DNA of 64,000 bases from the NCBI GenBank assembly GCA_002269645.1, contig NIVC01002188.1:62001-126000 (forward strand), written 5' to 3'. Shown here one piece after another: positions 12,836 through 24,264 of this stretch. This DNA comes from Macrostomum lignano (taxonomy: Eukaryota). The notes below the pieces were generated by a model. The model was given only the letters and a program-made list of their open reading frames with translations, searched no databases and was not told the DNA's origin. Position 1 is the stretch's first letter. The number at the start of each line of letters is the position of its first letter. The translations under genes and the position numbers were made by a program.

Positions 12836-15800
12836 ATGAAAGCAGCCGTATTTTGCATTGCTGCAGTCTTCTTAACCATCATATTTTCGTGTGAGTAGCA
12901 AACCAACAAAAACGCTTTATCCATTTATTCAATAAGGTTTCGCCAATTCCTAGTGGTAATACTTTTTATTTTGCAGCTAAGCTAAGCCTGATGGTCACGC
13001 ATATCTGACATTTGGTTTTCTTAGAGATCTCAATTGCTGTTTCTAGGCTGAGATCGGCCGGTATTTTATGCAAAATGTCAATAGCTATTTGAAGTAAAAT
13101 TTACGTTAAAGATCCAACAGCCATCCGTATATTAATGTACGCGTATAGCTCCTGTGTGTATTCTCAGTTAAGCATACATGTATGAACTCTCTTATTGGTA
13201 CAGATATTGGATAATCGGATATAATTTCAGACAAAAGTAATCTGCCAGTCAGTCTATACCATACACATTACTTATGTATGCATACCCGTACGTGAGCTCT
13301 ACGAAATAAAGATCGCAGCAAAGATCGTCGCGGTCTAACAGGCTACCAGTATTTAGAAAAACCTAATAAATATCTATAAATTAGGCCGAGTTTGTGGCCA
13401 TAATATTAATACACCTCCTATTGTTTGTCGTGAGAATTGAAAAATGTAATAAAAAACTATAAATTTGCAGATCCAGCTGATGCAAGGCGAGGTGGCTTTG
13501 GAGGCAGATTTGGTGGCTTTCTTGGGAGCTACAGGTACTCGTTATCATACAGACACTACAGGTACAGAAGCCTCAGGTACAGGCCCAGCTCATCCTCCCG
13601 GACATATAGACGTTACTATCGCCGATATTCCATGCGGTCGGGCGTCTATCCCTCCTCGGTTTATCGACAAAGCTCGCGGGTGAAAGTTTCGGCAACCAAA
13701 ATGGGGTGAGCCAATTCGAGCTTCTTAGATCCTTTTAAAAGGTGTATTAGATTTGGAAAAACATACTCTCGTGAAATCAGAGAGATAAAGATCGAGCTTT
13801 GGTAATGCCACTTTGTTTAAAATACATGTATCAGTCTCCAATACTACAGGGAGGAGGGAGCAACCTGCAAAGTAATAAGGATTCAACACAAGCAAATTAC
13901 TTGTCCCCTAGAGCATAGTACTGTTGAGGTAACAGACACAGGTAGATACCGGGGACAGACACGGGGGAGATATTGGGGGCAGACACAGGTAGATACCGGG
14001 GACAGACACGGGGGAGATATTGGGGGCAGACACAGGTAGATACCGGGGACAGACACGGGGGAGATATTGGGGGCAGACACAGGTAGATACCGGGGACAGA
14101 CACGGGGGAGATATTGGGGGCAGACACAGGTAGATACCGGGGACAGACACGGGGGAGATATTGGGGGCAGACACAGGTAGATACCGGGGACAGACACGGG
14201 GGAGATATTGGAGGCAGACACAGGTAGATACCGGGGACAGACACGGGGGAGATATTGGGGGCAGACACAGGTAGATACCGGGGACAGACACGGGGGAGAT
14301 ATTGGGGGCAGACACAGGTAAATACCGGGGACAGACACGGGGGAGATATTGGGGGCAGACACAGGTAGATACTGGGGACAGACATGGGGGAGATATTGGG
14401 GGCAGACACAGGTAGATACCGGGGACAGGCACGGGGGAGATATTGGGGGCAGACACAGGTAGATACCGGGGACAGACACGGGGAGATATTGGGGGCAGAC
14501 ACAGGTAGATACCGGGGACAGACACGGGGGAACTTTTGACAGTGTTGAGGACAGACTCAAGTTCCGGTTAAGTAACTTCCGGTTCCAAGGAAAGTAACTT
14601 CCGGCACTTGTTCCGGTACCGGTACTTTAAAAAAAAGTAACTTCCGGTACTTCCGTCACCGGTCCTTTCTAACTTTAAAGAACCGCCAATTAAAAAGTAC
14701 TTAAACATGTCTTCGTGAAAAAAACAGTCTCGAGTTAAACACGATGTTATTCCTCAAATAAAGATGCTACATAATGTTTTTTTATTAACGCATCCAAAAT
14801 TTGAGCGAACTAATAAAACCTTTACAAAACAAAGATTAGCAGTTCATCAGGACGATTCAAATAAAAAATTTGGAGGCTGATTTTCAAACATTGATTCTGA
14901 CTCTTCAGAAGTATGTATGGAGATAATTTTTGTCCAATAGATGTGTCACAATGATCAGTGTAGAATACTTCAGGCGACTCTTAGTTTGTGTGGGCCATTC
15001 TCTTGTCGTCCTACTTTGCAATAGTATTGTGCTGTAGTTTTACAGCAGCGTAAGTATACTTTTGTACTGCTGACTCATTTAGAATAAATAATAATATTCT
15101 GGGAGCCTTAGAAATGCCAGTTAACAGTTAACAAAAACATAGGCGTAGGAACGGGGGGGGGCAGTGGGGCAGTAAAAAGTGGGGGGGGGCAGTAATGGTA
15201 TCTGGCCCCTTCACAATTTAAATTTAAAATGTAGAATTTTTGCTTATTTTTAGTTTTTGCTGCTTTGCATGAATGCATTTTGCTGCAGGGCGACAAAACA
15301 TAGCACCTGCAGCGCCAAAATGAGTGCCTGCGTCGCTAAAATGGGTGCCTGCGTCGCTAAAATGGGTGCCTGCGTCGCTAAAATGGGTGCCTGCGGCACT
15401 TTATAAAATGAGTGCTGACAAGACGCGACGGACTCTGAAAATAATCGGTACATGATAATGTGCATTTTCCATATAAAAAATCTGACTCGACGGGGTGTGC
15501 GCCCTGTGCCCCCCCCCCCTAAATCCGTCACTGAACCTGCCTCCCCCACTTTTTGAAACTTTCCTACGCCTATGAACAAAAAAAATGCCGGACAACAAAT
15601 GGCTGGAATTTGATAGATGGACCAATGCACAAGACTTTAAAATAACTTGATTAGTGTTTTTGGGCTGTAATCAGAAAATGAAAATTAGCCTCAAAAAAGT
15701 TAAAACTCAAAACCATGCTCAAACCTTCTTAGAATGCATCACTCGTGTCGTCCTGCACGAACATCGAAATGAAGAAATCGGCCTTCAAAAAATGTTCCAC

Positions 15801-17487
15801 GAATCACGAGTCTGGCGTCCTAATGTACTGCTAGTTATGCTTGTTATAAAACTTCCAAGGGGTTGTTAAACACAATGATGTTTACGAGTATTGTTTTGAA
15901 TGTGTCTTGTTTCAGCATTTATAGTAGTTAACAATTTAATTACTTCATTCTATGATTCTATATATGATGCTTAAAACGTGCTTTAACCTAAAAAGTAAAA
16001 GCCACATGATCTAGGATAATCTTTTTTTACCTTTTTATAATTGTACTACGAGTATTTTGGTGAAAGTTTTGCGCTTTTGAAAAATATTTAGTGCTAAATT
16101 GACTGTTCGGCACCTAAAATTTCATTTTAAAGTACCGGAGGACCGGACTTATCAAAAAGTAACTTCCGTTACCGAAGTCCGGCATTCTAAAAAAAGAACC
16201 GGAAAAAAGTGCCGCTTTAAAAAAAGTAACTTTCGGTACTAAAAGTGCCGGAAGTGCCGGAACTTTGCCCAACACTGGATTTTGAGGACAGACACAGGTA
16301 GATACCGGGGACAGACGGTTCACGGCCCATGCATAGCAATTAAAAGAACCATTTGAGAGCTTGAAATTCGCATGAAGTCCCTGAAAGGAAAAATAAACTT
16401 TGATCTTCCCTCCCGCAGCGGTATCACCAGCAACAAGAAGGCGCTGCTTCTAGCCGGCTCCGTGTACATCGCCACCAGAGTCCGGCCCAGGATATTCAAC
16501 AGCCGAGGCAACCTGTTCAACAAAGTCACCGAAGATTTCGCCATCTGCGCTGGCTTGGTTCGCACTCGTTCAAATTCGACGCATGGCTGGTACGCGTACG
16601 ACCAACCGGAGTTGAATGACTCCAGTACGAGCAGCGCGTTGACTCCAACCGAAATGTCAACCACCCCCGGTTCGAGCACTGCTCAAAGACTGACAGAGAG
16701 TGGAAACAGCACAGGCAGCAGCACGACTTCTCCAATCGTGACCTACCAGTACTTCTTGTGCCCCAGCGATTTGTTCAACTACGCATACGACGGCGAGGAC
16801 ATTTACTGCTGCGGCCCGGCTGGCCACCAGATGTGCTGCAGCAAGGAGGACTTCAAGGAGCAGCTTGGCAAATTCAGCTCTGTGGGACTTGGCATGGGGC
16901 TGCTGTTTGGCGTTTTATTCGTCGCTTCTGGTTGCGGCATTACAATTTATTTGTGTCGCGACAGGGTGCGATCGGTCTTCCGTAAAATGGGCGGCAGCGG
17001 CTCTGCTGGGACAGCCAGACAGGATGTCACATTTCGGCCAGTGGCCAAGACTGAGACTGAGAAGGACGCACACGTGACTCTGTCCGACTTACGCGGACGT
17101 CGTCGCAGCAACAGCCGCAGCCAAAACAACAATCTCTATCCGCATTCAGCTCCGAATCCAGTGCCGTACCCGCTTTATCCGACTGCGATCGGCGGGAGAA
17201 CTCAGCCGCAGTACCCGCATTACCCGCCCCAGGTTAATGGCAGTAGCAATGGCGGCGTCAGTAGCAGGGGAAATCAGCTGCAGTATCCGCTTTACCCGCC
17301 CCAGGTTAATGGCAGTAGCAATGGCGGCGTCAGTAGCAGGGGAAATCAGCCGCAGTACCCGCTTTACCCGCCACCCACCCAGCAGATTCCACCAATGCCT
17401 CAGCATCCGCCGCCAGCATACGAATCCGTTGAAAACGTTACCAGGCCAAGAAGAATGACTAAAAAGTCGTTGCAAACAACTCTCTAG
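12836..17487 (+). CDS. Shisa-like type I membrane protein with cationic R/Y/S/G-rich N-terminus, paralogue A (exons 12836-12890, 13471-13705, 16419-17487; 452 aa)
   Basis: Exon 1 MKAAVFCIAAVFLTIIFS|GTGAGT (phase 1) joins TTTGCAG|exon 2 [16 protein letters not shown]..., whose GG|GTGAGC donor (phase 2) matches the polypyrimidine acceptor CTTCCCTCCCGCAG|C. Exon 3 encodes C...FLCP...YCCG...MCC, a TM helix, a juxtamembrane Cys and PPPAY. All four junctions are conserved in paralogue B. Confidence 0.8.
13934..14530. repeat. Minisatellite, 47-bp unit (two diverged 23/24-bp subunits), intron 2 of paralogue A
   Basis: AGACACAGGT at 13934 and 13981; about 12.5 copies. A remnant continues at 16286-16316 after the hAT insertion. 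Confidence 0.95.
14540..16277. mobile_element. hAT-like non-autonomous element in intron 2 of paralogue A, interrupting the minisatellite
   Basis: Termini CAGTGTTG...AAGTTCCGG / CCGGAACTT...CAACACTG. AAGTAACTTCCGG-type subterminal repeats at both ends. Degenerate 8-bp TSD ACTTTTGA / GATTTTGA (6/8). Confidence 0.72.
15138..15574. mobile_element. hAT-like MITE (437 bp) nested in the 14540-16277 element
   Basis: 14-bp perfect TIR CATAGGCGTAGGAA (15138-15151 / 15561-15574). Exact 8-bp TSD AACAAAAA (15130-15137, 15575-15582). Internal 21-bp repeat AAAATGRGTGCCTGCGTCGCT. Confidence 0.88.
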
Positions 17488-23700: not shown

Positions 23701-24264
23701 TATTTGTGTCGCGACACGCTGCGATCCGTCCTACGTCGCAGCAGGGGCGGCAGAAGCTCTGCTGGGGCAGCCAGACAGGATGTCACATTTCGGCCAGTGG
23801 CCAAGACTGAGGAGGACGCGCACGTGACTCTGTCCGGCTTACGCGAACGTCGTCGCAGCAACAGCGGCAGCCAACACGACCACCCTTATCCGAACCCAGC
23901 TCCGGCGGTTCCGGCGGCGTACCCGCTCTATCCGACTGAGCTCGGCGGGGGAAACCAGCCGCAGTACCCGCTTTACCCGCCCCAGGTTGATGGCAGTAGC
24001 AACAGAGGCGTTAGCGGCGGGGGAAACCAGCCGCAGTACCCGCTTTACCCGCCCCAGGTTGATGGCAGTAGCAACAGAGGCGTTAGCGGCGGGGGAAACC
24101 AGCCGCAGTACCCGCTTTACCCGCCCCAGGTTGATGGCAGTAGCAACAGCGGCGTCAGCGGCGGGGAAAACCAGCCGCAGTACCCACTTTACCCGCCGCC
24201 CGCACAGCAGATGCCGCCGATACCTCAGCATCCGCCGCCAGCATACGAAGATTTGCAGCATTGA
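20717..24264 (+). CDS. Shisa-like type I membrane protein with cationic R/Y/S/G-rich N-terminus, paralogue B (exons 20717-20768, 21295-21553, 23169-24264; 468 aa)
   Basis: Same structure and phases as paralogue A: [17 protein letters not shown]|[29 protein letters not shown]...|[18 protein letters not shown]...CP..YCCG..MCC-TM-...[10 protein letters not shown]. Exon 2 is read in a frame that the ORF track does not list. Confidence 0.82.
21795..22682. repeat. Minisatellite, 24-bp unit (GAGATACCGGGGACAGAGACAGGG), intron 2 of paralogue B
   Basis: About 37 tandem copies; homologous to the subunits of the 47-bp array in paralogue A. Confidence 0.95.

Follow-up and report, generated by a model that had tools for sequence, protein, structure and literature searches.

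Two neighbouring genes, here called A and B, lie in tandem on contig NIVC01002188.1 of the flatworm Macrostomum lignano, within a stretch of 64,000 nucleotides (positions 62,001 to 126,000 of the forward strand) referred to below as the window. Each gene has three exons (Table 1). When spliced, gene A gives an open frame of 452 residues and gene B one of 468 residues. All four junctions are in frame and follow the GT/AG rule, with GTGAG(T/C) donors and pyrimidine-rich (Y)nCAG acceptors, and in each gene intron 1 is in phase 1 and intron 2 in phase 2. The product of gene A matches the GenBank entry 'hypothetical protein BOX15_Mlig032636g1' with 100% identity over 100% of its length, and the product of gene B is identical to PAA60155.1 (Mlig001245g1). 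According to a protein look-up, GenBank places both genes, together with a downstream gene encoding 720 residues, on NIVC01002188.1 of assembly GCA_002269645.1 (Mlig_3_7).

The original prediction, made from the nucleotide sequence of the window, had joined the exons in matching phases conserved between the two copies, and these joins reproduce the GenBank proteins exactly. It had also described the genes as hidden, with only fragments visible among the open reading frames (ORFs). A bacterial-style ORF list of the window does contain only the exon-3 ORFs, but the genes are not hidden, as GenBank annotates both of them on Mlig_3_7 from transcripts. The only source of that annotation was RNA-seq-based transcripts (StringTie/TACO assemblies and a transcriptome assembled de novo), on which TransDecoder called the ORFs (PMC5730564). 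The exon junctions are thus indirectly supported by RNA, because the GenBank models that match A and B derive from transcripts. We conclude that A and B are transcribed tandem paralogues that are already annotated as hypothetical proteins. In UniRef both carry the name 'CX domain-containing protein'. An older UniRef model (P0001, 565 residues) lacks exons 1 and 2 and joins exon 3 of gene A to exon 3 of gene B; the small exons 1 and 2 are therefore readily overlooked.

Table 1. Exons and predicted protein features of genes A and B, in window positions (TM, transmembrane; aa, amino acids).
Feature	Position	Strand	Content or basis
Gene A exon 1	12836..12890	+	Start codon; signal peptide except for its end (aa 1-18 plus 1 nt)
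Gene A exon 2	13471..13705	+	End of signal peptide (..YPADA); polycationic segment from 13485
Gene A exon 3, including stop codon	16419..17487	+	Tract, Cys module, TM helix, tail
Gene A conserved hydrophobic tract, aa 102-121	16432..16491	+	Residues invariant between flatworm and oyster; collinear in hhalign
Gene A six-Cys ectodomain, C140..C237	16546..16839	+	Pfam Shisa_N on aa 207-242; alignment to Shisa-3 (5m0w)
Gene A predicted TM helix, ~aa 252-276	16882..16956	+	Kyte-Doolittle >1.9; hhalign to oyster TM helix
Gene A predicted cytoplasmic tail, Pro/Tyr/Gln-rich	16957..17484	+	Repeats 17198-17372; PPAY 17410-17421
Gene B exon 1	20717..20768	+	Signal peptide; start codon at 20717
Gene B exon 2	21295..21553	+	Acid-free polycationic segment from 21309
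Gene B exon 3, including stop codon	23169..24264	+	Tract, six-Cys region, TM helix, repeats, PPAY
Gene B hydrophobic tract	23182-23241	+	
Gene B six-Cys region	23296-23592	+	
Gene B predicted TM helix	~23635-23709	+	
Gene B tail, 72-bp repeats	23943-24197	+	
Gene B tail, PPAY	24235-24246	+	

Domain layout of the A and B proteins

A and B are laid out alike. From the N-terminus they comprise a signal peptide, a polycationic segment, a short hydrophobic tract, six ectodomain Cys residues, one TM helix, and a Pro/Tyr-rich tail with a PPAY motif. This is the order that had been proposed for them. The predicted signal-peptide cleavage, between ADA and RR after a hydrophobic stretch at the N-terminus, is consistent with the -3/-1 rule as read from the sequence. 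The segment after ADA was described as made largely of Arg, Tyr, Ser and Gly without acidic residues, and its composition bears this out: these four residues account for 71% of 76 residues in A and 77% of 84 residues in B, neither segment contains Asp or Glu, and the net charge is +19 in both. Several RR pairs lie within the polycationic segment. We considered whether this segment could be cytosolic and ruled this out, as the module that follows it is rich in Cys and carries N-glycosylation sequons. A second TM helix formed by the tract was likewise ruled out, as its hydrophobic run is only ~12 residues long and no 19-residue window exceeds 1.5 on the Kyte-Doolittle scale.

The ectodomain Cys residues of A are at positions 140, 211, 227, 228, 236 and 237. 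Cys140 is followed, in both A and B, by a Ser/Thr-rich (mucin-like) insert of ~65 residues with three N-x-S/T sequons (16549-16743 in gene A), which is missing from a short M. lignano paralogue and from the oyster proteins described below. The Cys core of A reads YFLCPSD-x11-YCCGP-x3-QMCC-x-KEDF (16744-16854). Apart from the signal peptide, A and B each contain one strongly hydrophobic 19-residue window (Kyte-Doolittle >1.9), with two Cys residues towards the cytoplasmic end of the predicted helix. The tail is ~175 residues long and ends in HPPPAYE. The 24-residue repeats in the tail form a coding variable-number tandem repeat with a 72-bp unit, present in 2.4 copies in A, 3.5 copies in B, and two fewer in P0004, the B-type gene of a second pair introduced below.

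Oyster proteins share the whole layout

When 1.84 billion representative proteins were searched exhaustively by phmmer with the exon-3 ectodomain, the only matches, apart from a bacterial repeat protein (P0006) that was judged spurious, were the paralogues in M. lignano itself and a single protein from an oyster, P0007 (Magallana gigas K1QRL0, E 6.8e-4). A profile search yielded full-length oyster proteins, namely C. gigas LOC105327640, Saccostrea cucullata LOC134256191 and proteins from Logan assemblies. We note that a word-indexed search with the N-terminal 173 residues of B gave no matches, not even the near-identical paralogue; the query is of low complexity, and this result is not counted as evidence.

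The oyster proteins have a signal peptide, polycation, tract, six Cys residues, TM helix and Pro/Tyr-rich tail in the flatworm order. Their mature N-terminus begins with RGGRGGGRGGRFSSRSRS, and the polycationic segment, of R-G-G / R-S type, contains 40-53 residues with no acidic residue and a net charge of +11 to +17. The tract contains LRTAILLGTVYGATRW, the Cys core reads ..FLCPTD..YCCG..QQYCC, the TM helix has a Cys-rich cytoplasmic end (..CYCC..), and the long forms have a tail with PPPY. The uncharacterised proteins LOC105327640 and LOC134256191 show the full architecture of A and B, including the tract (..AILLGTVYGATRW..) and the PPPY tail. They differ from A and B in lacking the Ser/Thr-rich insert, in having few Tyr residues in the polycation and more introns, and in being only ~35% identical.

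When profiles built from flatworm sequences only and from oyster sequences only were compared with hhalign, the Cys module and TM helix aligned with 99% probability (E 7.5e-18). The tract region alone aligned collinearly with P ~6e-4. In the numbering of A, the tract residues K103, L106, G110, V112, Y113 and A115 are invariant between flatworm and oyster. Outside the tract, G97, C140, F209, C211, P212, D214, Y226, C227, C228, G229, Q234, C236, C237, F242, G247 and two Cys residues in the TM region are invariant in both phyla, and the six ectodomain Cys residues (C, C, CC, CC) are invariant in all 11 flatworm and oyster sequences. In the N-terminal segment, none of the 10 full-length members has an Asp or Glu, and the net charge ranges from +11 to +21. 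The number of Tyr residues in this segment is 12-15 in the flatworm long forms versus 0-2 in the oysters.

Judged by these sequence comparisons, A and B belong to a real family that is conserved between a flatworm and bivalves, that is, between two spiralian phyla. The architecture is not a Macrostomum oddity, because the whole layout, polycation and tract included, is kept in oysters. With the searches used, the family is seen only in M. lignano and oysters, and the sensitivity of these searches is limited for so short a module.

Tandem copies, homeologues and divergent paralogues

The nucleotide identity between A and B is ~45% in the intron, jumps to 95-100% precisely where exon 3 starts at its acceptor, and falls away immediately downstream of the PPAYE codons. 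Exon 2 is more conserved than most of its flanks, and the contrast is weak for exon 1. A homeologous tandem pair, P0003 followed by P0004, is found on contig NIVC01000092.1, with the two genes ~10 kb apart in the same orientation and with the same three exons. This pair has a kinase gene upstream of its A-type member and a gene encoding 700 residues after its B-type member. A divergent M. lignano paralogue (P0005/P0008, 273/282 residues, ~40% identical) also has the same three exons with identical phases. Its intron 2 interrupts the same first Gly codon of 'MGG' as in A, B and the homeologous copies, just before the tract, and the tail of this short paralogue also contains PPAY. The homeologous pair and the divergent paralogue share the protein layout of A and B as well, and these recurrences go beyond what chance would produce.

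For A compared with B, the ratio of non-synonymous to synonymous substitution rates (dN/dS) is 0.39 for the tail, 0.70 for the tract plus ectodomain and as high as ~0.98 for the cationic segment, and the homeologous pair behaves alike. The cationic segment can thus vary freely in sequence and is constrained in composition and charge, because dN/dS is ~1 and yet acidic residues are absent and the charge is high everywhere. The conserved property of this segment is its charge and not its sequence. We also observed that dS is 0.08 in the 5' half of exon 3 (16419-16850 versus 23169-23600) and 0.17-0.68 elsewhere, with values of 0.27-0.34 for exon 2 or the tail. Gene conversion between A and B could account for the low value, as could a constraint on the nucleotide sequence itself.

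The fairly high overall dN/dS (~0.55-0.59) and the repeat- and transposon-rich surroundings raise the question of whether A and B are annotation artefacts or decaying, functionless duplicates. We regard this as extremely improbable. Open frames and splice sites are intact in four copies and in the divergent paralogues, conservation between A and B is limited to exons, the GenBank models are derived from transcripts, and the oyster proteins share the architecture.

Assignment to the Shisa-like superfamily

The only Pfam match of A is Shisa_N (PF13908, 18.6 bits), which is also the only match of B with E below 0.01 (19.0 bits). The gathering score of Shisa_N is 22 bits. The short paralogue P0005 scores 21.8 bits and the oyster protein P0007 scores 24.3 bits, above the gathering score, and 10 of the 11 family members match Shisa_N at E<0.01. 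When the family profile was searched against all PDB sequences, a single, weak match was obtained, mouse Shisa-3 (5m0w), in which the FxCPxD, CCG and (Y)CC elements were aligned. The proposal that the Cys pattern, TM helix and PPxY motif mark A and B as Shisa-like thus stands at the level of the superfamily, where Shisa_N and Shisa-3 are the sole matches, and does not stand at the level of the gathering score. The CX module, a comparison suggested in the original prediction, found no counterpart: PF01705 was not matched by A, B, P0005 or P0007 at E values up to 10 in hmmscan. WBP-1 (PF11669) was likewise not matched by A or B in the Pfam hmmscan; only the short paralogues reach it, below threshold (P0005 23.1 versus 28.1 bits).

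The STMC6 superfamily was reportedly delimited by Pei and Grishin in 2012 as proteins with one TM helix, six Cys residues that are conserved and, usually, PY motifs. A and B show these features: a predicted signal peptide with one TM helix, six Cys residues before the helix, and a Pro-rich tail with PPxY. We therefore lean towards the view that A and B are type I single-pass proteins which, within the Shisa-like (STMC6) superfamily, represent a spiralian branch not yet characterised, a placement that we hold jointly with the adaptor role proposed below and rate as somewhat better than even.

Like A and B, members of the Shisa family, whose solved domain is that of mouse Shisa-3 (5m0w), are type I proteins with a juxtamembrane F-x-C-P-x-D...CCG...(Y)CC module and a Pro-rich cytoplasmic tail. 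Shisa proteins have eight ectodomain Cys residues, whereas A and B have six, with CCGPA in A in place of CCGSC in Shisa-3, and the first Cys of A and B is set apart by the mucin-like insert. A polycation and hydrophobic tract ahead of the module are, to our knowledge, not described for Shisa proteins. A and B fall outside Shisa proper (Shisa1-9), because they have six Cys residues, not eight, and score below threshold.

Shisa is known to hold back Frizzled and FGFR in the endoplasmic reticulum (ER). If A and B acted in the same manner, they would reside in the ER and retain immature receptors through the Cys-rich domain, independently of PPxY. That Shisa_N and Shisa-3 are the top sequence matches would fit such a role, as would the oyster forms that have no PPxY tail. 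We nevertheless consider it rather unlikely. Besides the six Cys residues and the CCGPA sequence, the Shisa_N scores are marginal, PPxY is retained across two phyla, and the N-glycan sequons with the mucin-like spacer suggest a protein of the surface or of post-Golgi compartments.

The STMC6 adaptors WBP1/WBP1L/VOPP1 and CYYR1 also have six Cys residues in the C, C, CC, CC pattern, a TM helix and a PPxY tail, and serve here as the model for a mechanism (PMC6991692; PMC11399591). A and B differ from them in matching neither the WBP-1 nor the CYYR1 Pfam family, in having only one canonical PPxY motif, and in having a much longer ectodomain with a polycation.

A resemblance to the N-termini of Shadoo (SPRN) and PrP had also been proposed. 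The signal peptide, basic Gly/Arg stretch and short hydrophobic tract do occur in the same order in Shadoo and PrP, and this order is kept from flatworm to oyster. A and B could accordingly be imagined as functional analogues, or very remote relatives, of the Shadoo/PrP N-terminus, in which a basic RGG-type repeat and a tract form a ligand- or membrane-binding module on a Shisa-like TM anchor. The likeness is in composition and order only, however: no prion or Shadoo Pfam family was matched at E up to 10 in hmmscan, and no sequence similarity was detected by this comparison. A and B also have a TM helix, a long cytoplasmic tail and a Shisa-like Cys module and no glycosylphosphatidylinositol (GPI) anchor, so that the anchoring is unlike that of Shadoo and PrP. 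We regard the resemblance as an analogy of order, and relatedness or shared function as very unlikely.

A candidate membrane adaptor with a polycationic N-terminus

In WBP1L, the PPxY motifs bring WWP1, WWP2, ITCH and NEDD4L to CXCR4, and WWP1 is brought to late endosomes by CYYR1 (PMC6991692; PMC11399591). By analogy, A and B would most likely act as membrane adaptors. Their PPxY motif, which is kept in both phyla (PPAY in the flatworm, PPPY in the oyster long forms), would bind WW domains and so bring HECT ubiquitin ligases of the NEDD4 family to the membrane, where the recruited ligase would control how a partner membrane protein, bound through the ectodomain or the TM helix, is trafficked or turned over. 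Acting as one module, the polycation and the tract would most likely bind a polyanion, for example sulfated glycans or an ectodomain of acidic character, and this binding would then set which partner or surface the adaptor engages. On balance, a PPxY membrane adaptor for NEDD4-type ligases with an N-terminus that binds a polyanion is the role that we slightly favour.

Several points weigh against this role and the family placement on which it builds. The Shisa_N scores of A and B do not reach the gathering score, the PDB match to Shisa-3 is weak (E 0.29), and the AlphaFold2 models are of low confidence, with a mean predicted local distance difference test (pLDDT) value of 42 from the single sequence and 36 from the 11-sequence alignment. 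When the pLDDT-42 model was compared with the PDB by Foldseek, no match had an E value under 2.9. Each protein contains a single canonical PPAY (residue 428 in A, residue 460 in B), and the oyster proteins P0010 and P0011 (205 residues) end soon after the TM helix and lack PPxY. The overall dN/dS between A and B is high and reaches ~1 in the cationic segment, which is under compositional constraint only. The polyanion binding is purely our own inference. Finally, the literature yielded neither functional nor expression data on any member of the family.

The high charge of the N-terminal segment may also be read differently, along the lines of the original prediction. A and B could be membrane-tethered precursors in which cleavage at dibasic sites, or at a point separating the polycation from the tract, frees an antimicrobial, adhesive or nucleic-acid-binding cationic peptide, with the Shisa-like part serving only as a sorting anchor. 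The net charge of +19 with no acidic residue and the several RR pairs would suit such a peptide, and the fast evolution that preserves only composition (dN/dS ~1) is typical of effector-like peptides. The 12-15 Tyr residues per flatworm segment also point in this direction, as Arg/Tyr-rich composition recalls marine adhesive proteins, but the oyster segments show no such enrichment (0-2). As read from the sequence, there is no furin-type R-x-[KR]-R site at the segment boundary, and no expression or secretome evidence for a released peptide was found. The best-conserved N-terminal element is the tract, after the polycation, which suggests that both work together on the intact protein. We therefore consider release of a peptide, and with it a mere anchoring function of the Shisa-like part, unlikely.

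A broader version of the adaptor role would combine these elements: a spiralian Shisa-like adaptor whose RGG/RS/RY polycation and tract serve as a tethered sensor of polyanions (glycosaminoglycan or nucleic acid), or as a shed peptide, coupled to NEDD4-dependent endocytosis, in a layout that parallels Shadoo and PrP. We think that this full combination is doubtful, and quite unlikely to hold in all its parts.

Introns and genomic surroundings

Intron 2 of both genes contains related, G-rich minisatellites, with a 47-bp unit in 12.8 copies in gene A (13933-14531) and a 24-bp unit in 36.5 copies in gene B (21807-22682). The two arrays share GGGGAGATA(C/T)..GGGGACAGA, and the array therefore seems to be older than the duplication. 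In gene A the array is broken by an insert of 1.76 kb (14532-16290) and resumes at ~16287. The ends of the insert are imperfectly inverted (CAGTGTTGRG..AAGTTCCGG, found by short-word BLAST), and no terminal inverted repeats were reported in it by the inverted-repeat tool. The insert is probably a non-autonomous DNA transposon. It contains a 21-bp array (15306-15395) that is related to an array at 54306-54567.

Between A and B lies a decayed reverse-transcriptase fragment on the minus strand (18629-19868), consisting of short ORFs, one of which matches Pfam RVT_1 below threshold (E 1.3e-5). Downstream of B, an intronless ORF of 720 residues on the plus strand (26746-28908) corresponds to the GenBank gene mentioned above; it contains Gln-rich coding repeats (27949-28172) and has no Pfam match, and the gene encoding 700 residues on the homeologous contig is its counterpart. 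Upstream of A, an exon with a protein-kinase domain is found on the minus strand (1553-2101; Pfam Pkinase, E 2.6e-19). As the homeologous A-type gene is likewise preceded by a kinase gene, synteny extends to both sides of the pair.

The block at 55300-60450 has a G+C content of 70%, compared with 31-60% in the rest of the window. Its minus-strand ORFs contain an endonuclease/exonuclease/phosphatase domain (58118-60307) and a reverse transcriptase (57372-58931), and we assign it for this reason to a non-LTR (long terminal repeat) retrotransposon. Related 20-bp arrays flank it (55325-55713 and 60169-60436). A run of long plus-strand ORFs at 43794-52005, which includes a reverse transcriptase and RNase H (49694-51514) and lies amid CT-rich arrays, is probably a retroelement.

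The density of minisatellites is extraordinary, with 54 Tandem Repeats Finder (TRF) rows of score >=100 in the window. Among them are arrays of 113 copies (2211-4798) and 88 copies (62131-63882). This agrees with reports that the M. lignano genome is rich in repeats (PMC5730564).

Implications

What is new here is the recognition, from sequence comparison, of a conserved subfamily in flatworm and oysters with a polycationic N-terminal module. As originally supposed, the combination is absent from characterised families: the gene identifiers of family members, including all seven of M. lignano, are mentioned neither in papers nor in the supplementary tables of the M. lignano papers examined. 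The subfamily would represent a previously undescribed branch of Shisa-like/STMC6 proteins that is present in at least two spiralian phyla. Its N-terminal module has kept its charge and layout although the lineages are far apart in evolution. Extracellular regions of low complexity do not usually behave in this way, which suggests that the module has a real ligand.

The practical value is modest. The analysis clarifies annotation, in that the UniRef name 'CX domain' could not be reproduced and an older model had fused both genes. Nothing known is overturned, and the family is now defined for later work. As M. lignano offers RNA interference and transgenesis, the function of these proteins is directly testable in this flatworm.

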